Below, in pieces: positions 3,938-60,142 of a stretch of 64,000 bases of DNA. The stretch is from the sequence record KY555145.1; one strand, given 5' to 3'. Below the pieces are notes generated by a model. It ran no database searches, was not told the DNA's origin, and was given only the letters and a program-made list of their open reading frames with translations. A program made the translations under genes and the position numbers. How positions within the stretch are numbered: the stretch's first letter is position 1; each line of letters starts with the position of its first letter.

Positions 3938-3986
3938 TAGCCCTTGCCGCCGGGCAATCCCGCCCGCCGCTTCGGAGTTTCGGCCC

Positions 3987-4532: not shown

Positions 4533-4588
4533 TTGACTTCGCCGCCGGGCAATCCCGCCCGGCGGTCCTCTTCTCAGGATCGCCCCTT

Positions 4589-5641
4589 ATGACCTCTCAT
4601 TCCATGGTTGCGCACCGTTGGGCGCAGGACGACGAGAACGGCCGCACCGCGCGCGGCTTCAACATGTATTTCGAGCGCTACGGACGCGGCGCCGACCGCG
4701 TCAACGTGATTTTTTCCTACGGGACTCACTTCCCGGCCGCCGCCTTCGTGACCGACGCGCACGGCCGCCGCGTGGTCCTCTACACGACGCGCCGCCGGAG
4801 CGTTTCGACCGCGAAACACCTTTCGCATATCCGCTACGCTATCCCGTCGGGCGTGCCGGTGTTTTCCGTGCCGAACGTGTCGCGGATGCACAAGCCGGGC
4901 GGCGCGGGCGACTTCCACGGGGACAACCTGCGCGCCTATATCGAGAGCGCCGCCGGCCTCGCCGAAAAGGCCAAGCGCGCCCGCGTCAACGGCCCTTGGC
5001 TGCTTAGCCAAGCCCGCGACCAACTCGCCGAAGCGCAACGCTACGCCGACGCCTTCAAGGTCAAGGGCTTCAAGGTCCCGGCCTTGGAAGACGTCGCCGG
5101 CCAATGGGCGAAGATGACGGCCGCCAAGGCGCGGGCCGAAGCCAAGGCCCGCAAGGAAGCCGAAAAGCGCGCCCGCGAAGCCCGCGAAGCCGAACGGCTC
5201 GCCGACGCCGAAGCCTTCGCCGCGTGGATGCGCGGCGAGCGCCAGAGCGCCCCGTTTAGCTACCGGGTGCGCGATGACGGGACCGTCTATCTTCGCCGCT
5301 TCCGGGGCGTGGTCCGCGACCTGCGCAGCCAAGAGCGCGACGGCTCGCGCGTCGATGAACTGCAAACCTCGCAAGGCGCGGCCGTGCCGTGGGAACACGC
5401 GGTCAAGGCCTTCCGGTTCATCAAGCTTTGCCGCGAACGCGGCGAGAGCTTCCACCGCAACGGCCGGGTGATTCGCGTCGGACACTTCCAAGTTGACGCG
5501 ATCAGCCCGAACGGGGACATGACGGCCGGTTGCCACCGGTTCGCGTGGGATGAAATCGAACGCATCGCCAGGGCCGAAGGGGTTTTCGACCTCCCCGCCG
5601 ACGCTGGCGCCGTCGAAACCCGGCAAGCCGAACCGGCCTAA
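4589..5641 (+). CDS. hypothetical early protein
   Basis: 350 aa, AGGA RBS; ATG at 4589 preferred to the upstream TTG. Confidence 0.8.
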   Translation: MTSHSMVAHRWAQDDENGRTARGFNMYFERYGRGADRVNVIFSYGTHFPAAAFVTDAHGRRVVLYTTRRRSVSTAKHLSHIRYAIPSGVPVFSVPNVSRMHKPGGAGDFHGDNLRAYIESAAGLAEKAKRARVNGPWLLSQARDQLAEAQRYADAFKVKGFKVPALEDVAGQWAKMTAAKARAEAKARKEAEKRAREAREAERLADAEAFAAWMRGERQSAPFSYRVRDDGTVYLRRFRGVVRDLRSQERDGSRVDELQTSQGAAVPWEHAVKAFRFIKLCRERGESFHRNGRVIRVGHFQVDAISPNGDMTAGCHRFAWDEIERIARAEGVFDLPADAGAVETRQAEPA

Positions 5642-5728: not shown

Positions 5729-5776
5729 GACTTTCGCCGCCGGGCAATCCCGCCCGCCGGCCAAGGATCGCAGACT

Positions 5777-6076
5777 ATGAATCTTTTCGTTGTCGCCATT
5801 GACCCCGCCCTCATCCCTTCGGCCGCCGGCTTCGTGGTCGCCTCCCCCTACGGGTGCGGCAAGTGGCGCGCGTGCGTCGGGAGCGAGGCGGACATGATCG
5901 CGCTTCGCGACAAGATGCGCCGCGCGCACCCGGCCCCGGAAGGCTACAGCGTCCAGCCCCTGGCGTCGTTCCTGGCCTATCTGGAGACGGTCGGGCAAAG
6001 CCCCTACGACCAGTTTCGCGCCCGCGACGCCGCCGCCCGCATCCTTGACACCCTGACAACGCACCTCGCCGCCTAG
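5777..6076 (+). CDS. hypothetical protein
   Basis: AAGGA RBS, 99 aa. Confidence 0.75.
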   Translation: MNLFVVAIDPALIPSAAGFVVASPYGCGKWRACVGSEADMIALRDKMRRAHPAPEGYSVQPLASFLAYLETVGQSPYDQFRARDAAARILDTLTTHLAA

Positions 6077-6893: not shown

Positions 6894-6941
6894 CTTCTTG
6901 CGGCCGGGCAATCCCGCCCGGCCGCTCAAGGATTGGATCGC

Positions 6942-7214
6942 ATGACCCGCGCTCAAGCCCTCGCCGACATGAACGCCCTTCCCGGTATCATCGCCTCCTT
7001 TGAGCGCGAGACGGGTGAATATCGCGTCACCCTGCGCTTTGGCCTGCTCCCCATGGGGCGCGGCGCCCAAGAGTGGATGCACGCGCGCCGCGAAGCCGTC
7101 GCCAGCTACAGCGACGACAAGGCCGACGCCCTGGCCACCGCCCGCGACATGTCCGCCCGCTGGGAGGCGATGAGCGCCGAAGAGCGTTCGCGCCTCTATC
7201 ACAACCCCGCCTAA
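6942..7214 (+). CDS. hypothetical protein
   Basis: 90 aa after promoter and hairpin. Confidence 0.7.
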   Translation: MTRAQALADMNALPGIIASFERETGEYRVTLRFGLLPMGRGAQEWMHARREAVASYSDDKADALATARDMSARWEAMSAEERSRLYHNPA

Positions 7215-9124: not shown

Positions 9125-9199
9125 TTGCTCGAAAAATTCCTAGAAGCTCACAAAGTCGTTTTCTGGCTGCTCTTGCTGGCCTGTTTGTGGCGCTTTTAA
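9125..9199 (+). CDS. 24-aa membrane peptide (copy 1)
   Basis: AAAGGA RBS plus TTG; MLEKFLEAHKVVFWLLLLACLWRF. Confidence 0.45.
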   Translation: MLEKFLEAHKVVFWLLLLACLWRF

Positions 9200-9227
9200 C
9201 GGTTTGTTAACCCCTGGCCCTCTAGGG
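9196..9227 (+). promoter_or_regulatory. early promoter with CtrA box
   Basis: TTAA-CGGTTTG-TTAA ... CTCTAGGG. Confidence 0.75.
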
Positions 9228-9282
9228 TCGAATTCCCGGCGCGGCAATCCCGCCGCCCCGGCCTTCCTTCGGAGCTTCCAAA

Positions 9283-9729
9283 ATGTTCGCTTCCGTGACC
9301 CTTCCCGCCCATGACGCCCAAGGCCTGAGCCTCGAAACCGTCCACATGGTTTTCGCCCGCGAACTGGCGCAACATTTCGACCACGTGACTTCCGCCCCCG
9401 TGGTCGAAAGCTGGACCGACGAGGAAACCGGCGCCGACCACGCGCAAGCCGCCGTCTGCTTCACCGTTTCGGCGACCCCGGCCGCGTGGGAAGCCAAGGG
9501 CGGGCGGCTCGCGCGCCGGCTGGAAAACCTCGCCGCGCGCTATGCCGCCGACTGCGACGCCCCGGCCCTGACTGTCACCCATTGCGACGGGCAAACGGTC
9601 TATGTCGGCGCTCTGGAAGCCCTGGCGCGCCCCGCTCCGGTGCAAGGCCCGACCCGCGACGCGGACCCGGCTTTCCTCCCCCGCCAGCGTGAGGACAAGG
9701 CCGCCCGCTTCGATCGCCTGACCGCCTAG
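9283..9729 (+). CDS. hypothetical protein (copy 1)
   Basis: GGAG RBS; near-identical to 11925..12371. Confidence 0.8.
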   Translation: MFASVTLPAHDAQGLSLETVHMVFARELAQHFDHVTSAPVVESWTDEETGADHAQAAVCFTVSATPAAWEAKGGRLARRLENLAARYAADCDAPALTVTHCDGQTVYVGALEALARPAPVQGPTRDADPAFLPRQREDKAARFDRLTA

Positions 9730-11766: not shown

Positions 11767-11841
11767 TTGCTCGAAAAATTCCTAGAAGCTCACAAAGTCG
11801 TTTTCTGGCTGCTCTTGCTGGCCTGTTTGTGGCGCTTTTAA
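11767..11841 (+). CDS. 24-aa membrane peptide (copy 2)
   Basis: Identical to 9125..9199. Confidence 0.45.
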   Translation: MLEKFLEAHKVVFWLLLLACLWRF

Positions 11842-11869
11842 CGGTTTGTTAACCCCTGGCCCTCTAGGG
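11838..11869 (+). promoter_or_regulatory. early promoter with CtrA box (copy 2)
   Basis: TTAA-CGGTTTG-TTAA. Confidence 0.75.
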
Positions 11870-11924
11870 TCGAATTCCCGGCGCGGCAATCCCGCCGCCC
11901 CGGCCTTCCTTCGGAGCTTCCAAA

Positions 11925-12371
11925 ATGTTCGCTTCCGTGACCCTTCCCGCCCATGACGCCCAAGGCCTGAGCCTCGAAACCGTCCACATGGTTTTCGCCC
12001 GCGAACTGGCGCAACATTTCGACCACGTGACTTCCGCCCCCGTGGTCGAAAGCTGGACCGACGAGGAAACCGGCGCCGACCACGCGCAAGCCGCCGTCTG
12101 CTTCACCGTTTCGGCGACCCCGGCCGCGTGGGAAGCCAAGGGCGGCCGGCTCGCGCGCCGGCTGGAAAACCTCGCCGCGCGCTATGCCGCCGACTGCGAC
12201 GCCCCGGCCCTGACTGTCACCCATTGCGACGGGCAAACGGTCTATGTCGGCGCTCTGGAAGCCCTGGCGCGCCCCGCCCCGGTGCAAGGCCCGACCCGCG
12301 CGGCGGACCCGGCTTTCCTCCCCCGCCAGCGCGAGGACAAGGCCGCCCGCTTCGATCGCCTGACCGCCTAG
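11925..12371 (+). CDS. hypothetical protein (copy 2)
   Basis: Near-identical to 9283..9729. Confidence 0.8.
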   Translation: MFASVTLPAHDAQGLSLETVHMVFARELAQHFDHVTSAPVVESWTDEETGADHAQAAVCFTVSATPAAWEAKGGRLARRLENLAARYAADCDAPALTVTHCDGQTVYVGALEALARPAPVQGPTRAADPAFLPRQREDKAARFDRLTA

Positions 12372-22142: not shown

Positions 22143-22159
22143 TGTCGTGAATCTTGACA
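22143..22159 (+). promoter_or_regulatory. late promoter motif upstream of portal
   Basis: TGTCGTGAATCTTGACA. Confidence 0.75.
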
Positions 22160-52898: not shown

Positions 52899-52973
52899 GC
52901 GTCCATCGTATATGGGTTATTGCTTCGCGTTGCCAACGCGACGAACCGGGTTCGAGTCCCGGTGGACGCTCCA
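52899..52973 (+). tRNA. tRNA-Gly(GCC)
   Basis: Loop TT-GCC-AA, CCA end. Confidence 0.9.
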
Positions 52974-52979
52974 ATTCAT

Positions 52980-53053
52980 GCGGGTATAGCTCAAAGGGAG
53001 AGCTACTGCCTTCCAAGCAGAAGATGCGGGTTCGAGCCCCGCTATCCGCTCCA
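52980..53053 (+). tRNA. tRNA-Gly(TCC)
   Basis: Loop CT-TCC-AA, CCA end. Confidence 0.9.
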
Positions 53054-54415: not shown

Positions 54416-54488
54416 GCTGCTGCGCCTGGATCGGCGCCGGCCCCTTGGTATGGGGAAGTAGAAGGTTCAATTCCTTCCAGCAGCACCA
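54416..54488 (+). tRNA. atypical tRNA-Thr(GGT)
   Basis: Perfect 7-bp acceptor G1-C72/C2-G71, loop TT-GGT-AT, aberrant D-arm. Confidence 0.6.
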
Positions 54489-55142: not shown

Positions 55143-55213
55143 GGGGTATGCGCAGGGCGCAGGCATCCTTTGCAAGGAAGTCGGGGTGGGTTCGAGTCCC
55201 ACATACTCCACCA
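55143..55213 (+). tRNA. tRNA-Ala(TGC)
   Basis: G3:U70 identity pair, loop TT-TGC-AA. Confidence 0.82.
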
Positions 55214-55401: not shown

Positions 55402-55488
55402 GGTAGGTGGTTCCGGCCTGGGGCCGGACCCGGTTGCTAACCGGCCGGAGCCGCAAGGCTTGGGGTTCGATTCCTCCTCCTACCGCCA
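55402..55488 (+). tRNA. tRNA-Ser(GCT)
   Basis: Class II cloverleaf. Confidence 0.85.
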
Positions 55489-55764: not shown

Positions 55765-55793
55765 TTGACACTGCGAAACTGTTCTGCTAGGGT
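55765..55793 (+). promoter_or_regulatory. sigma70-type promoter, tRNA operon 3
   Basis: AAATTTTTT, TTGACA, GCTAGGGT. Confidence 0.7.
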
Positions 55794-55800
55794 TCACGTC

Positions 55801-55899
55801 ATGAGCAAGACCTATCGTCAATTTGTGCGCCAGATTCAGGTCGTCCGGAATATCCGGGCGGGCCGCTCGCGCATGGCTGACGAAGGGTTCCGGGACTAG
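55801..55899 (+). CDS. leader peptide 3 (32 aa)
   Basis: MSKTYRQFVRQIQVVRNIRAGRSRMADEGFRD, nearly leaderless ATG. Confidence 0.7.
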   Translation: MSKTYRQFVRQIQVVRNIRAGRSRMADEGFRD

Positions 55900-55928
55900 G
55901 TCCCACTCCACGTTCAACCAGTTTCGCG

Positions 55929-55960
55929 AAGGCCCGCCTGGACACCCAGGCGGGCCTTTT
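55929..55960 (+). terminator. attenuator terminator 3
   Basis: AAGGCCCGCCTGG/CCAGGCGGGCCTT then TT. Confidence 0.85.
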
Positions 55961-56001
55961 CGCATTTCAGCTTCAGATCACGGAGATCGCCAAACAGACA
56001 C

Positions 56002-56086
56002 GGATGCTTAAAGCTGGAGGGCTCCAGCCGGGGACTGTAAATCCCCTCTCTTCGGAGGAGTGGTTCGATCCCACAAGCATCCACCA
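56002..56086 (+). tRNA. tRNA-Tyr(GTA)
   Basis: Loop CT-GTA-AA, long variable arm. Confidence 0.85.
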
Positions 56087-56091
56087 ACCAC

Positions 56092-56167
56092 GGACTCGTA
56101 GCTCAGCAGGTAGAGCGCCGGCTTGAAACCCCGGAGGTCGGAGGTTCGACTCCTCCCGTTTCCACCA
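56092..56167 (+). tRNA. tRNA-Phe(GAA)
   Basis: Cloverleaf, two acceptor mismatches. Confidence 0.85.
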
Positions 56168-56172
56168 ACAAC

Positions 56173-56248
56173 GCCCGATGAGCCAGATGGGAAGGCGCCG
56201 CCGCGACATGGCGGGATTGAGAAGGTTCGATTCCTTCATCAGGCACCA
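56173..56248 (+). tRNA. tRNA-Val(GAC)
   Basis: Loop GC-GAC-AT. Confidence 0.85.
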
Positions 56249-56250
56249 AT

Positions 56251-56326
56251 GCAAGTGTAGCTCAGTTGGTAGAGCAGCGGACCGATAATCCGCCCGTCCC
56301 TGGTTCGAGTCCAGGCATTTGCACCA
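56251..56326 (+). tRNA. tRNA-Ile(GAT)
   Basis: Loop CC-GAT-AA. Confidence 0.88.
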
Positions 56327-56333
56327 ATTCTGA

Positions 56334-56408
56334 TGTGGCATAGCTCAGGGGTAGAGCGCGCGCTTGATAAGCGTGAGGACGGGGGTTCGAAGCCCTCTGC
56401 CACTACCA
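56334..56408 (+). tRNA. tRNA-Ile(GAT)
   Basis: Loop TT-GAT-AA. Confidence 0.88.
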
Positions 56409-56441
56409 GTTTCCAGGCCGGCGGAGATGCGCCGGACCTGA

Positions 56442-56517
56442 TGGCGTTTAGCATAGTGGGAGTGCAGGGGTGTCACATACCTCGATCGAACTGGTTCGAT
56501 TCCAGTAACGCCAACCA
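56442..56517 (+). tRNA. tRNA-Val(CAC)
   Basis: Loop GT-CAC-AT. Confidence 0.85.
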
Positions 56518-56522
56518 ATCGT

Positions 56523-56596
56523 TGAGGGTTCGTCTAACGGTAGGACGGCTGGGTCTGGTCCAGCTAATCTAGGTTCGAGTCCTAGCCCCTCATCCA
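56523..56596 (+). tRNA. tRNA-Gln(CTG)
   Basis: Loop GT-CTG-GT. Confidence 0.87.
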
Positions 56597-56604
56597 AATA
56601 CTGT

Positions 56605-56680
56605 TCAGGGTTAGTTTAGCTGGTAAAACACTGGGTTTTGGCCCCGGCGTCGCTAGGTTCGAAGCCTGCACCCTGATCCA
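56605..56680 (+). tRNA. tRNA-Gln(TTG)
   Basis: Loop TT-TTG-GC. Confidence 0.85.
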
Positions 56681-56691
56681 TTTGAGTTTAT

Positions 56692-56766
56692 TCCAGTCAA
56701 TGCACAAGGTGTGCAGCGGCACTGTTAATGCCTGTGAGCCCGGTTCGATTCCGGGGTCTGGAGCCA
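56692..56766 (+). tRNA. tRNA-Asn(GTT)
   Basis: Loop CT-GTT-AA. Confidence 0.87.
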
Positions 56767-56792
56767 ACACGCCGGCCGAGGCCGGCACAAGC

Positions 56793-56875
56793 GCCCTGGT
56801 AACCGAGGGGGACTACGAATCCCTTAGTCGTAGCAGGAGTTGAAAAGGGTGGTTCGAATCCACTCCAGGGTGCCA
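56793..56875 (+). tRNA. atypical tRNA-Arg(ACG)-like, D-arm-less
   Basis: 7-bp acceptor, GGGGA/TCCCT with loop CT-ACG-AA, canonical T-loop, CCA end. Confidence 0.5.
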
Positions 56876-56882
56876 AATTCAT

Positions 56883-56965
56883 AGCGCGCAGGCCGAGCAG
56901 GATCATCGTCAGGCGTCGCCCTCCGAAGGCGAAGAGGCCCGGTTCGAGTCCGGGGCGCGCTGCCA
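56883..56965 (+). tRNA. tRNA-Arg(CCG) with enlarged D-loop
   Basis: Loop CT-CCG-AA; 17-nt D-loop. Confidence 0.8.
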
Positions 56966-56968
56966 TTC

Positions 56969-57046
56969 GCGCAGGTAGCTCAACGGACCCAGAGCGACCG
57001 TCTTCTACACGGAGGGTTGGGGGTTCGAATCCCTCCCTGCGCGCCA
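56969..57046 (+). tRNA. tRNA-Arg(TCT)
   Basis: Loop CT-TCT-AC. Confidence 0.9.
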
Positions 57047-57327
57047 AGCTTGACGAGTGATGCCGAATCGCTCAGCCTCCCGATCGGCTCTCGATGGGCC
57101 TCCACAAACCCAGTTCCGGACGATCTTCGAACGCGGCCTGCCGTGGAGGGGTGCTGGAAGGGCCGGGGTTGTGGAAACCGTCGAGCATCTCCTACATCCG
57201 GATCGGGCCTCCTGGGGGCTCCTCCGGTCAACCAGGGCCTGACCCGACCCCGGAGATGCGCCGTCTACGATCACCCAGGACCGTCCTGGCGGTGGAAAGG
57301 GTCTGAAATTTTTCTGGCGCTGATGTG

Positions 57328-57460
57328 TTGACACTCCTCGGAGGTTCGTCTAAAACCAGCAGCGTCAGAGCGGCGTTGGACCACGAGGTCCGCCGCGAGC
57401 TTCTGCGTTGTCGTCAGGAACGGCCCGTCAGCAATCCCGCTGGCGGGTCGTTTCGTTTTG
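57328..57460 (+). ncRNA. candidate ~100-nt small RNA with promoter and AAUCCC-loop terminator
   Basis: TTGACA, 17 bp, TAAAAC; hairpin CCCGTCAGC-AATCCC-GCTGGCGGG then T-rich tail. Confidence 0.5.
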
Positions 57461-57494
57461 GGCGCAATGCGACGTTCAGTCCAACCATGGGTAG

Positions 57495-57511
57495 TGTCAT
57501 GAATCTTGACT
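57495..57511 (+). promoter_or_regulatory. late promoter motif
   Basis: TGTCATGAATCTTGACT. Confidence 0.65.
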
Positions 57512-57579
57512 TTCGGCACTTATTCCGGTAGCTTTCCCGACATCAGCAAACGCTCACAAGTCGGGGACCGAGAGCCGTC

Positions 57580-57996
57580 ATGTCGCAAGACCACAACGGC
57601 TCGTCCTCGGGCCAAGAACGCATCTACCAGAAACTGGATGAGCTTGGCTCCATGCACGCGCGCACCCGTGAAGATATTGCCCGCATCCAGGAGATGATGC
57701 GAGCGGTCGGTTCGTCGCAGGAGCGGATCGAAAAGCGCCAGGATCATTTCGAGCGCGAAATCTGGCGTGAGATGGAAGACCGCGCCGCGCGCACGAGCGC
57801 CCAACTCGACGAAATCAAGAGCCACACCAACCTGCGCATCGAGGAGATCGAGGCCAAGGTCGACACGATCCGCGAGGAACGGATCGCCGAGAAGGCCCAG
57901 TGGCGCGGCCCCGAGAAGGCCATCGCCGCCCTGGTCGCCGTCGCCGGGGCCATCGCCGCCTTCGCCACGATCCTCACTTTCCTGAAGGGACACTAA
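57580..57996 (+). CDS. coiled-coil protein with C-terminal TM helix (holin/XhlA-like candidate)
   Basis: Coiled coil plus AIAALVAVAGAIAAFATILTFL. Confidence 0.6.
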   Translation: MSQDHNGSSSGQERIYQKLDELGSMHARTREDIARIQEMMRAVGSSQERIEKRQDHFEREIWREMEDRAARTSAQLDEIKSHTNLRIEEIEAKVDTIREERIAEKAQWRGPEKAIAALVAVAGAIAAFATILTFLKGH

Positions 57997-58088
57997 GGCT
58001 TATAGTCAAGCTTGCGCACCTGCGGCCAGAAGTCGCGCTTCTTGACACCCGATCTGGGCCGGCATAACCATAGGGCCATCGTTCCTGG

Positions 58089-58310
58089 GTGGAGTTTTCC
58101 CTAATGGCTGTCGCGCTTACTGTCGTCTCGGTTGAGACCGAATCTACCATCCAAGGTGTTGACCCCGACGCGGCGCATGGGCGCCTGATCGAGGTCCTGC
58201 ATACCGCCGCAGAAGCGGGTCTTGGGGAAATGACGTTGGAAGTCAAAGCGGAGATCGCGGCGCTGCTCCAGCAGGCGTCCGTGGAACTCTCCCACTGCCG
58301 GCCGGTGTAG
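58089..58310 (+). CDS. hypothetical protein
   Basis: 73 aa; start may be ATG 58104. Confidence 0.5.
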   Translation: MEFSLMAVALTVVSVETESTIQGVDPDAAHGRLIEVLHTAAEAGLGEMTLEVKAEIAALLQQASVELSHCRPV

Positions 58311-58344
58311 GGGTCCCGTAAATCGCCATCCCAGAGGGAGCGAC

Positions 58345-59211
58345 GTGTCCGAGTCTGCTGAGTTCAACCCGCTCGACCAAAATCAGTTCCCTCCTCGCCT
58401 CACCAAGGCTGCTGCGCGACAGGCGCGGCGCCAGGAGCGCAGCCAGAAAAAGGACCCCACGGCCAACAAGCCGAACTACAAGGCGCTCGAAGCCAAGACC
58501 GAACGCCAACGTCGCTATATCCAGGCCCTCAAGGCCGGTGAAAGCGTCATCGCCATTGGCGGAGCCGGCACGGGGAAGACCTATATCCCGTCCCGGCTCT
58601 TCGCCAAGAAGCTGATCGAGGCGAAGATCGAACGCCTGATCATCGCCCGCGTCACCGCCTCGCGCCCCAAGCACGCCCTGGGCTTCCTGCCCGGCAAGCT
58701 GGAAGCCAAGCTCGCGCCGTGGCTCGTCCCGGTGATCGAGGGCGTCAAGGCCGAGATGAACGCCCAGACCTACACGCAGTTGCAGGAAGCCGGCAAGATC
58801 GAGTTCGCCTCGTTCGAGCACATGCGCGGGCGGACTTTCGCCGAGTGCTGCGTCCTGCTCGACGAGGCCCAGAACGCCGACTACAAGGACCTGAAGATGG
58901 TCCTGACCCGCTGGGGCGAGAACGCCCAATACGCGGTCACCGGCGACATCGACCAGATCGACGTCGACGATTCGGGCCTGGAGACGGTCGTCGACATCGT
59001 CGAGACCCACGACATCCCGATCCACGTGATCGAGTTCACCGACGAGGACGTGGTCCGCTCGCCCATGGCCAAGGCCTGGGTCAAGGCGTTCTCCGCCCAC
59101 GAAGGCAAGGACGAACGGGCGCGGCGCTTCCACCGTCCCGCTGTCAGGAATCTTGACGTCCTGCCAGCTTTTATCGATAATGGCCGTGTCACGAAACCCG
59201 TGGCGTCGTGA
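58345..59211 (+). CDS. phoH: PhoH-family ATPase
   Basis: GGAGTGKT Walker A, LGFLPG, HMRGRTF, LDEAQNA, TRWGE, GDIDQID, DVVRS. Confidence 0.93.
   Translation: MSESAEFNPLDQNQFPPRLTKAAARQARRQERSQKKDPTANKPNYKALEAKTERQRRYIQALKAGESVIAIGGAGTGKTYIPSRLFAKKLIEAKIERLIIARVTASRPKHALGFLPGKLEAKLAPWLVPVIEGVKAEMNAQTYTQLQEAGKIEFASFEHMRGRTFAECCVLLDEAQNADYKDLKMVLTRWGENAQYAVTGDIDQIDVDDSGLETVVDIVETHDIPIHVIEFTDEDVVRSPMAKAWVKAFSAHEGKDERARRFHRPAVRNLDVLPAFIDNGRVTKPVAS
59142..59158 (+). promoter_or_regulatory. late promoter motif inside phoH
   Basis: TGTCAGGAATCTTGACG. Confidence 0.55.
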
Positions 59212-59228
59212 CAAAGACGTAGCGCACC

Positions 59229-59750
59229 ATGGCCTTCACCTTCGTTGTTGAGACTGGCGCCGGGGACCCGGCCGCGAACTCGTACTGCGACGTGCAGTTC
59301 GCGGACGACTACATCTACGCCAATGTCTACGCCAACACCGCCTGGGACGCGCTGGATCAGGACGGCAAGGAACGCTTCCTGGTCCGGGCGTCCAAGTACC
59401 TGGACCGGTCGATCGCCTGGGCCGGGGAGAAGGTCGATGAGGACTCCGGCCTGCGCTGGCCGCGCGCTGGCGTCTATGACGTCGACGGCTTCCTGATCCC
59501 CAGCGACGCCATCCCGCAGCAACTCATGGAGGCCACCGCCGAGATGGCGGCGGCCCTCATGAACAACGACTGGACCTCGCCGCAGACCACGCGCGGCATG
59601 AAGGAAATCCAGGTCGACGTCATCGAACTGAAGTTCGACAGCGAAATCCAGCGCGGCTCCATGCCCGACATCGTCATGTCGATCCTCGAAGGTCTGGGGG
59701 TCGTCAAGACCGGCACCCGTCCGGCCTTCAAGAAGATCATCCGCCACTAA
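59229..59750 (+). CDS. head-tail adaptor (DnaT-like family)
   Basis: ANSYCDV..ADDY..RASKYLD..GLRWPR..IPQQLMEAT. Confidence 0.8.
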   Translation: MAFTFVVETGAGDPAANSYCDVQFADDYIYANVYANTAWDALDQDGKERFLVRASKYLDRSIAWAGEKVDEDSGLRWPRAGVYDVDGFLIPSDAIPQQLMEATAEMAAALMNNDWTSPQTTRGMKEIQVDVIELKFDSEIQRGSMPDIVMSILEGLGVVKTGTRPAFKKIIRH

Positions 59751-60142
59751 TGGCCCTCGAAGCCTTCATCCGTTCGCAGGTCGTCGTCGCCTTCAACCAG
59801 CTAGACGACATCGCCAAGCGTTGGACCTACGTCCAGCGCTCGGGCGATCCGGTGCGTGACGTCGAGACCGGCGTGACCACCTACCCGTCGACCGAGATCG
59901 TCATTCCCAAGGCGGTCAAGGTCCGGTTCAAGAAGGACGAGAAGGACGCCCACGGCCAGACCCTGGTGGGCGAGAAGGTCCTGTTCCCCCGCGTCTACCT
60001 GCCGGGGGATTTCGAGACCGCCACGTCCGACTATCTCGTCGACGAGAAGGACATCATCTGGGAGATCATGAGCGACCTGGGCGACCCGGCCTCGGCGCTG
60101 GCGATGTTCCAGGTCCGCAGCACGCGGAAGAAGACCCCGTGA
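59750..60142 (+). CDS. head-closure/head-tail joining protein
   Basis: Position and size. Confidence 0.6.
   Translation: MALEAFIRSQVVVAFNQLDDIAKRWTYVQRSGDPVRDVETGVTTYPSTEIVIPKAVKVRFKKDEKDAHGQTLVGEKVLFPRVYLPGDFETATSDYLVDEKDIIWEIMSDLGDPASALAMFQVRSTRKKTP

Follow-up and report, generated by a model that had tools for sequence, protein, structure and literature searches.

A candidate small RNA gene of Caulobacter phage Ccr29 with an open linker complementary to a shared operon leader

Introduction

Phage regulatory RNAs known so far are mostly cis-antisense RNAs or come from prophages (PMC12197685). Here we analyze bases 1-64000 of KY555145.1 (64,000 nucleotides (nt); hereafter the window), from Caulobacter phage Ccr29, and describe in it a candidate small RNA (sRNA) gene downstream of a large transfer RNA (tRNA) cluster. 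Its predicted product has an open segment complementary to a leader found throughout one class of phage operons. A 4-kb segment (56000-60000) matches this record with 100% identity at identical coordinates, and the GenBank annotation agrees. Ccr29 belongs to the phiCbK-like siphophages (Shapirovirus); its 229-kb genome has direct terminal repeats of 13.3 kb, and the motif and hairpin counts below refer to its 216-kb unit genome. phiCbK itself is a classic Caulobacter phage. In its genome paper, tRNAs are the sole functional RNAs reported (PMC3556154), and its transcriptome paper analyzed expression gene by gene (PMC10688885). Our literature search on phiCbK-like phages turned up no account of a small RNA, the leader motif or the hairpins described below.

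The phage RNA nearest in logic to the one described here is c4 of P1 and P7. c4 is a short structured RNA whose exposed segments pair in trans at the ribosome binding site of a messenger RNA (mRNA) and so control a gene block (PMC12197685). However, c4 is cut from a longer transcript of the operon that it controls, acts on one mRNA and belongs to temperate phages, whereas the Ccr29 RNA has a promoter and terminator of its own, lies far from its putative targets, would reach ~20 separate operons through one leader and belongs to a virulent phage. We found no sequence or Rfam relation between the two. OOP of lambda and sar of P22 are also small phage RNAs with their own promoter and an intrinsic terminator that base pair with phage mRNAs (PMC12197685), yet they are cis-antisense to a single target; the candidate targets of the Ccr29 RNA number ~20 and lie 60-140 kb away.

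Hfq-type seed sRNAs, such as the prophage RNA DicF, likewise combine their own promoter, stem–loops around an open conserved seed, a U-tailed terminator and pairing near several Shine–Dalgarno elements. In contrast to the targets of these RNAs, those proposed for Ccr29 share a near-identical leader, seemingly built to match the seed, and have the same promoter type as the sRNA. In T4, the proteins RegB and RegA inactivate early phage messages at Shine–Dalgarno regions. The outcome in Ccr29 is likely the same, but the proposed agent is an RNA instead of a protein. With trans-acting base-pairing sRNAs in general, the Ccr29 unit shares its own promoter and terminator, the lack of a kept open reading frame (ORF), a conserved fold with an exposed seed, and an excess of complementary initiation regions. 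On this evidence, all of it from sequence, its anatomy is that of a trans-acting seed sRNA.

A predicted RNA with its own promoter and terminator

The unit comprises the following parts.

57306-57356, plus strand: promoter P1, with an A/T tract (57306-57313), TGGC (57315-57318) and GTG (57325-57327)
57328-57356, plus strand: core of P1, with –35 hexamer TTGACA (57328-57333), a 17-nt spacer and –10 hexamer TAAAAC (57351-57356)
57362-57460, plus strand: predicted sRNA, ~99 nt, with the 5' end placed from the –10 hexamer and the 3' end at the T tract
57362-57408, plus strand: stem–loop 1 (SL1), an imperfect 5' stem–loop with a 4-nt apical loop and an anti-Shine–Dalgarno-like CTTCTG (57400-57405) at its 3' base
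57406-57416, plus strand: seed CGTTGTCGTC(A), of which 57409-57416 (8 nt) is the single-stranded linker
57417-57459, plus strand: stem–loop 2 (SL2), an intrinsic terminator with an extended 16-pair stem (57417-57454) and a T-rich tail (57448-57459)
57424-57447, plus strand: core of SL2, with stem CCCGTCAGC (57424-57432), loop AATCCC (57433-57438) and stem GCTGGCGGG (57439-57447)

The Ccr29 RNA has a predicted minimum free energy (MFE) of -54.8 kcal/mol (z = -5.3). Its three-part fold of SL1, open linker and SL2 is also predicted for phiCbK, BL57, Rogue and BL10, with z-scores of -3.8 to -6.4 over four sequence types and an open linker of 8-10 nt. In the Ccr29 fold, the linker is unpaired with a probability of 0.87-1.0. 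In Ccr29, phiCbK, Rogue and BL10, MFE structure and centroid are identical, and the BL57 centroid is only slightly different. A single fold dominates, and no alternative anti-terminator fold was predicted. The core stem of SL2 has nine pairs, eight of them Watson–Crick (seven G-C) and one U.G (T57428-G57443). Its tail, TCGTTTCGTTTT (57448-57459), holds eight T in 12 bases but is interrupted and fails a scanner rule of five T in eight. It passes TransTermHP in three GenBank records (phiCbK, Karma and Swift) and is weaker in Rogue and BL10. In those three records, the homologous hairpin is labelled 'predicted rho-independent terminator', and these annotations were made with TransTermHP (PMC3556154). 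In phiCbK, the predicted sRNA would lie at ~52951-53049 (NC_019405) and the annotated terminator at 53010-53047, with gp334 as the gene behind P2.

All 26 phiCbK-like records carry the sRNA unit, and no phage record outside this group was found to have it. We aligned it from nine phages, covering Shapirovirus, Poindextervirus (Rogue and BL10) and BL57. Invariant across the nine are a 12-nt block (57406-57417) and the lower stem of SL2, while SL1 diverges. The hexamers of P1 and its TTCTGGC..ATGTG element are also invariant, and the P1 spacer diverges. A covariance model scored 71-128 bits at all nine loci, and in the model-guided alignment 97.6% of cells were paired, versus 37-49% with partners slid. 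Compensatory changes were seen in three pairs, two in the apical helix of SL1 and one in the upper stem of SL2. The nine loci hold five distinct sequences, all from one clade, and the covariation is supportive, not decisive.

Database searches gave no family and no further relatives. Neither Rfam, at the gathering score or with permissive settings, nor ARAGORN assigned the sRNA to a family; the lone permissive Rfam match (Hammerhead_II, opposite strand, E = 6.8) is at chance level. An exact-pattern scan of IMG/VR returned Karma, Rogue and BL10 only, and searches of IMG/VR and metagenomes guided by gp090, the first gene downstream, returned nothing new. The 20 pattern matches in metagenomes were all chance, none having the sRNA architecture. 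Two ORFs overlap the unit, at 57325-57531 (plus strand) and 57271-57519 (minus strand). We considered a coding reading of both and rejected it, because the genera differ by indels of 1, 3 and 1 nt, which leave neither frame conserved.

An earlier note on this DNA, made from the letters alone, had described here a promoter, a unit of ~100 nt, and a hairpin with an AATCCC loop, a U.G pair and a U-rich tail, all of which are present in the sequence. It had also proposed a stand-alone small RNA. We concur: such an RNA of ~99 nt at 57362-57460 is very likely, because the unit has its own conserved promoter, fold and terminator and keeps no reading frame, and because gp090 has a separate promoter (P2, below).

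The linker is complementary to the leader of a class of operons

The linker with its flanking bases (57406-57415, CGUUGUCGUC) is the exact reverse complement of GACGACAACG, i.e. GACGACAAC(G). The sequence GACGACAAC occurs 20 times in the unit genome: in 17 operon leaders, at two intragenic sites and once in the sRNA gene. In a 9-mer scan along the sRNA, the ratio of observed to expected matches peaked at 57407-57415, with 19 matches elsewhere versus 1.4 expected. Seventeen of these 19 sites lie 5-9 nt past the –10 hexamer of promoters of the form TGGC-N6-GTG-TTGACA-17-TAGAA, directly 5' of GAGGAGG and a start codon, and the start codons behind these leaders are annotated in Ccr29 in nearly all cases. 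Judging from promoter geometry, the motif would span approximately +1 to +10 of each leader, adjoining the Shine–Dalgarno element. The common leader thus reads GACGACAACG, one base, GGAGG. Two leaders, at 118731 and 172742, differ from the motif by one base; a third, which runs up to the start of gp188 (146788), has a shortened form, ACGACAGC. Including variants, the class comprises ~20 operons, at 118-161 kb (minus strand, except for the plus-strand leader at 118731) and at 169-200 kb (plus strand).

P1 shares its architecture (TGGC-N6-GTG-TTGACA) with these ~20 gene-proximal promoters at 118-200 kb. In KY555145.1, the promoters of the full TGGC-N6-GTG-TTGACA-17-TAGAA form, again ~20, stand at 118731-200379 on the plus strand and at 137837-161298 on the minus strand. 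The minus-strand array of motif-leader operons includes tgrL. In phiCbK, tgrL is an early gene, and ~41% of genes reach their maximum at 15 min, with expression falling afterwards (PMC10688885).

Complementarity is predicted to extend past the motif itself. CUUCUG at 57400-57405 (CCUCUG in Rogue and BL10) faces the Shine–Dalgarno element, so that the predicted duplex of 57400-57415 with the leader has 10 Watson–Crick pairs, one mismatch and 5-6 pairs over the Shine–Dalgarno. Duplex energies averaged -28 kcal/mol for motif leaders, versus -16.4 kcal/mol (standard deviation (s.d.) 3.4) for ~820 other windows around a Shine–Dalgarno and start codon, a difference of ~3.4 s.d. Thirteen of the 16 best duplex windows were motif leaders. 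Once the base of SL1 is opened, the net gain from pairing is predicted to be -17 to -24 kcal/mol.

The leader motif and the seed are both intact in Rogue, BL10 and Karma, where the promoter spacers differ, and the leader cassette and the sRNA are found in the same 26 records. A scan of 2.9 million IMG/VR contigs found more than one copy of the 17-mer leader in the three phiCbK-like contigs alone. A loose scan of IMG/VR for promoter plus motif was swamped by chance matches.

A fixed distance of 5-9 nt from the –10 hexamer would also be expected if GACGACAAC were a DNA-level site, bound by a phage or host protein at +1 of these promoters, with the inverted copy in the sRNA gene being another such site or a functionless fossil. 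At ~11 of the 19 sites, CCTC...GAGG flanks the motif and turns it into a DNA palindrome, and the complementary stretch in the sRNA is similar to the leader over ~19 nt, which is what an inverted duplication would produce. However, the 3' arm of the palindrome is the Shine–Dalgarno itself, and the promoter-linked copies all have one orientation, whereas the sole inverted copy falls exactly in the single-stranded linker between two stable hairpins of an RNA that has support of its own. That copy is invariant next to an SL1 that has diverged, which argues against a fossil. We consider this explanation unlikely.

Two copies of the motif, at 137837 and 193411, are enclosed by a terminator-like palindrome (GGGCCTCC..GGAGGCCC) with a T run behind it. 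Since the motif is within the palindrome, the terminator of the upstream operon, the start region of the next promoter and the next Shine–Dalgarno overlap at these two sites.

The SL2 loop recurs in hairpins of early leaders

The loop of SL2 is found again in the terminal repeat, in the 5' untranslated regions (UTRs) of early genes.

3951-3966, plus strand: early 5'-UTR hairpin, loop AATCCC, preceded by a CtrA-box promoter
4541-4566, plus strand: early 5'-UTR hairpin, loop AATCCC, 10-bp stem
5741-5756, plus strand: early 5'-UTR hairpin, loop AATCCC
6900-6925, plus strand: early 5'-UTR hairpin, loop AATCCC, 10-bp stem
9241-9256, plus strand: early 5'-UTR hairpin, loop AATCCC
11883-11898, plus strand: early 5'-UTR hairpin, loop AATCCC, exact copy of the 9241 hairpin

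These six hairpins and SL2 have the same loop and the same G-C/C-G closing pairs on unrelated stems. The earlier note had placed the same loop on unrelated stems ~45 kb away, and the nearest early hairpin is indeed 45.5 kb from SL2. The early hairpins lie ~10 nt 3' of a TTAAC-N6-GTTAA box, which is followed by an element resembling CTCTAGGGT, and 15-40 nt 5' of a start codon. The box is a CtrA site, and CtrA binding and CtrA-dependent expression were shown at the phiCbK terminal-repeat promoters of gp005 and gp018, in a paper that does not mention the hairpins (PMC9437464). The identical promoter, hairpin and gene start at 9196-9300 and 11838-11940 of the window belong to an internal duplication of ~2.6 kb (gp014-019, gp020-025), which accounts for a terminal repeat of 13.3 kb in Ccr29 versus 10.3 kb in phiCbK.

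Eight hairpins in the unit genome combine a stem of five or more pairs with an AATCCC loop: the six early hairpins, SL2 and a weak intragenic one at 78001. By chance, the loop would be expected ~0.005 times among the 29 terminator-like hairpins with 6-nt loops, or ~0.07 times if all 400 hairpins with 6-nt loops and stems of 7 bp or more are counted, both estimates being post hoc. On its own, the 10-mer GCAATCCCGC is about as frequent as chance would give (~0.9 expected; two non-hairpin copies, at 106428 and 106714). We regard the loop coincidence as moderately significant, given that it was noticed after the fact.

Such a coincidence underlies another proposal of the earlier note, namely that the sRNA is a sponge titrating a protein that binds the early hairpins, or that this protein opens the SL2 terminator. 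Early transcripts whose 5' hairpins combine a constant loop with variable stems are reminiscent of lambda nut/boxB, and an RNA with the same loop recalls decoys such as CsrB and RsmZ. But Ccr29 has no boxA-like partner or N-like protein, and no terminators that would have to be overridden follow its early hairpins. Known protein sponges carry many sites, whereas each Ccr29 sRNA has one AAUCCC hairpin, the loop of SL1 being an unrelated 4 nt. The ten terminal-repeat proteins examined are all of unassigned function, and none contains a known RNA-binding domain, though a new fold is possible. A search of other RNAs for an exposed complement of the AAUCCC loop gave chance-level 8-mers only, one of which is the antisense of the tRNA-Cys anticodon arm.

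Conservation bears on the sponge proposal in both directions. The earlier note had held that variation of the loop in relatives would count against a shared factor, and such variation is in part what the relatives show. In SL2, the Shapirovirus phages and BL57 have the loop AATCCC; Rogue has ATCCC and BL10 has TTCCC, both on a rebuilt upper stem. The loop is among the more variable parts of the sRNA. Early hairpins in Rogue and BL10 are mostly AATCCC, so the SL2 loop does not track the early loops. At the same early promoters in Rogue, BL10 and BL57 together, AATCCC makes up most of the loops, and the others are ATCCC (three), ACTTCC, CTGGAAA or CTGGATA, and ATCG. Among these, CTGGAAA and ACTTCC in Rogue and ATCG in BL57 are unrelated loops at orthologous hairpins, and the BL57 orthologue of the 6900 hairpin is a wholly different hairpin with the ATCG loop. 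A stable 5' hairpin thus seems obligatory at early leaders, with the loop preferred, not required. Yet a GC-(A/U)UCCC-GC core is kept in every relative, despite the changed upper stem of SL2 in Rogue and BL10, and ATCCC variants occur among the early hairpins too; a shared recognition feature therefore remains conceivable. The sponge would leave the invariant linker and its 19 complementary sites unexplained. Taken together, we find a decoy role, or opening of SL2 by such a protein, improbable. The AATCCC loop is real, but it is probably not the main point of the unit.

In six of 13 leaders with (A)AUCCC loops, from four phages, the Shine–Dalgarno region contains GGAU(U/C), which complements 4-5 bases of the loop just upstream; the complement is found in none of four leaders with other loops (small numbers). 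The regions in the window are 4541-4590, 5741-5780 and 6900-6945. Contact between loop and Shine–Dalgarno inside an early leader is conceivable from these sequences.

Neighboring genes and the case for a terminator alone

The unit lies between the tRNA cluster and the structural genes, with a second promoter on its right.

56969-57046, plus strand: tRNA-Arg(tct), left neighbor of the unit and last tRNA of the large cluster
57484-57534, plus strand: promoter P2 of gp090, with GGGTAGTGTCATGAATC (57490-57505, including GAATC at 57501-57505), TTGACT (57506-57511), a 17-nt spacer and TAGCTT (57529-57534)
57580-57996, plus strand: Ccr29_gp090, annotated as a hypothetical protein of 138 amino acids, first gene after the unit

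According to the annotation, gp090 opens the structural block, with PhoH and then head–tail and tail genes downstream. The simplest account of the locus would be that SL2 ends transcription of the tRNA cluster, and that P1 and SL2 together form a promoter-proximal attenuator of gp090 and the structural module, in which case the RNA would have no function in trans. In line with this, the hairpin is annotated simply as a terminator; a consensus scan found no other terminator-like site between tRNA-Arg, the last tRNA, and SL2; the structural module begins 120 nt downstream; and the interrupted T tract makes read-through plausible. But such a role would not call for the conservation of SL1 and of a promoter 95 nt upstream, nor for a linker that is both open and invariant, and the alternative anti-terminator fold that attenuation would require is not predicted for the sRNA. 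Moreover, gp090 has its own promoter. The flanks of P2 are invariant and its spacer variable in the nine-phage alignment, and P2 belongs to a family of ~20 sites (GTCGT-GAATC-TTGAC) in structural, lysis and replication regions. With P2, conserved and of another family than P1, standing downstream of SL2, gp090 is independent of P1. A terminator or leader with no other function is, in our view, a doubtful explanation.

The earlier note had likened P1 to the promoters of the tRNA operons, which is half right. P1 bears their A/T tract, and AAATTTTT with TTGACA is common to P1 and to sites 53075, 53869 and 55765. However, its TGGC-N6-GTG element and –10 hexamer belong to another promoter family than the tRNA-block type. 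The note had also offered an orphan attenuator whose tRNAs were lost, there being no tRNA-Met or tRNA-Cys. Both are indeed absent from the window, but at 106-108 kb the phage encodes tRNA-Met twice and tRNA-Cys once; with these tRNAs kept elsewhere and the unit conserved as it stands, the proposal is not supported.

Other observations concern the tRNA block. The spacer between tRNA-Arg and P1 (57047-57300 of the window) is non-homologous between the Ccr29/phiCbK type and the Karma/Swift/Magneto type, and homology of the two types picks up ~30 nt 5' of the –35 hexamer, at ~57297. Three tRNAs called by ARAGORN are absent from the Ccr29 record: tRNA-Thr (54416-54488), tRNA-Ala (55143-55213) and tRNA-Ile(aat) (56692-56766). 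Two further segments are called by neither ARAGORN nor GenBank: 55402-55484, which is tRNA-Sec-like (Rfam 44 bits, cut-off 47), and 56792-56872, which is tRNA-like (Rfam 25 bits). Within 55765-55969, a promoter with the A/T tract and TTGACA of the tRNA-block type is followed by a short ORF from 55801 and then by a hairpin that carries a terminator annotation in phiCbK. This unit gave a weak match to the sRNA model (21.9 bits, E ~0.05) and may be another small RNA or small-protein unit. Outside the window, KY555145.1 has a 2.5-kb stretch with no annotated protein gene (106282-108826). Its two strands carry tRNA-Cys, tRNA-Gly and the two tRNA-Met, along with several elements that look like promoters or terminators. 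The stretch also contains two plus-strand copies of GCAATCCCGC, one of them antisense to the tRNA-Cys anticodon arm.

Plus-strand sites of the P2 family, (T)GTCGT-GAATC-TTGAC(A), lie in the window at 22149, 25092, 28172, 33157, 35904, 52443, 57501, 59148 and 61167; KY555145.1 has about ten more at 70-120 kb and one at 210786. The GAATC pentamer fits the recognition site of the host methyltransferase CcrM, and gp235 is a phage-encoded GcrA homologue. This suggests, from the sequence of the sites, that promoters of the GAATC family may be methylation- and GcrA-linked. The promoters of the phage can now be sorted into three sequence families.

Discussion

In our reading, 57306-57460 is a self-contained sRNA gene whose product acts as an antisense regulator of one promoter class, a proposal that we rate as evenly poised between true and false. 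Anatomy, conservation and complementarity with its statistics were computed directly; from these we infer expression, the starts of the target mRNAs, the direction of the effect and its timing.

Under this proposal, host RNA polymerase would transcribe the sRNA from P1, SL2 would end the transcript, and the two strong hairpins would stabilize it. The mRNAs of the motif-bearing promoters (class 2) would begin at or just before the motif, as promoter geometry suggests, so that the 5' leader would be short and open and consist of motif and Shine–Dalgarno. The linker, together with its 5' flank (CUUCUG-CGUUGUCGUC, 57400-57415), would then pair with the leader common to the class, and pairing would block ribosome binding or expose the mRNAs to decay. 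As the sRNA accumulated, it would damp or shut off translation of the class, amounting to delayed negative feedback on ~20 operons, the tgrL array included. SL2 may in addition insulate the structural module from the tRNA cluster and from P1.

Given that pairing occurs, repression is somewhat the likelier effect. In read-through transcripts the motif may instead be the loop of a hairpin that hides the Shine–Dalgarno, and pairing could open that hairpin. The direction of the effect is uncertain because palindromes surround the motif in ~11 leaders and are fully terminator-like, with a T run, in two.

Several points weigh against regulation by this sRNA. The starts of the target mRNAs are placed by promoter geometry, and a start downstream of the motif would leave no target. 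A motif at ~+1 could be a DNA-level operator or a signal in the initial transcribed region. A scan with E. coli-type consensus sequences called neither P1, whose –10 hexamer ends in C, nor SL2, whose T tract is broken. Because that tract is interrupted, and weaker still in Rogue and BL10, some read-through into gp090 is possible. Conservation and co-occurrence are not independent tests, since the five distinct sequences come from one clade. Finally, that the sRNA and its targets share a promoter class fits delayed feedback, not a simple early-to-late switch.

If the antisense proposal holds, a single sRNA acting on a shared leader would offer a simple explanation for the switch-off of large arrays of small early genes, and a design unusual among phage regulatory RNAs. 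A broader scheme can be put forward tentatively. One leader would label a whole temporal class of operons in a virulent phage, and one sRNA from the same promoter type would set the translation window of that class. A second label, GC-(A)AUCCC-GC, would mark the CtrA-driven immediate-early mRNAs as well as the 3' end of the sRNA, tying both early classes to one RNA-binding partner.

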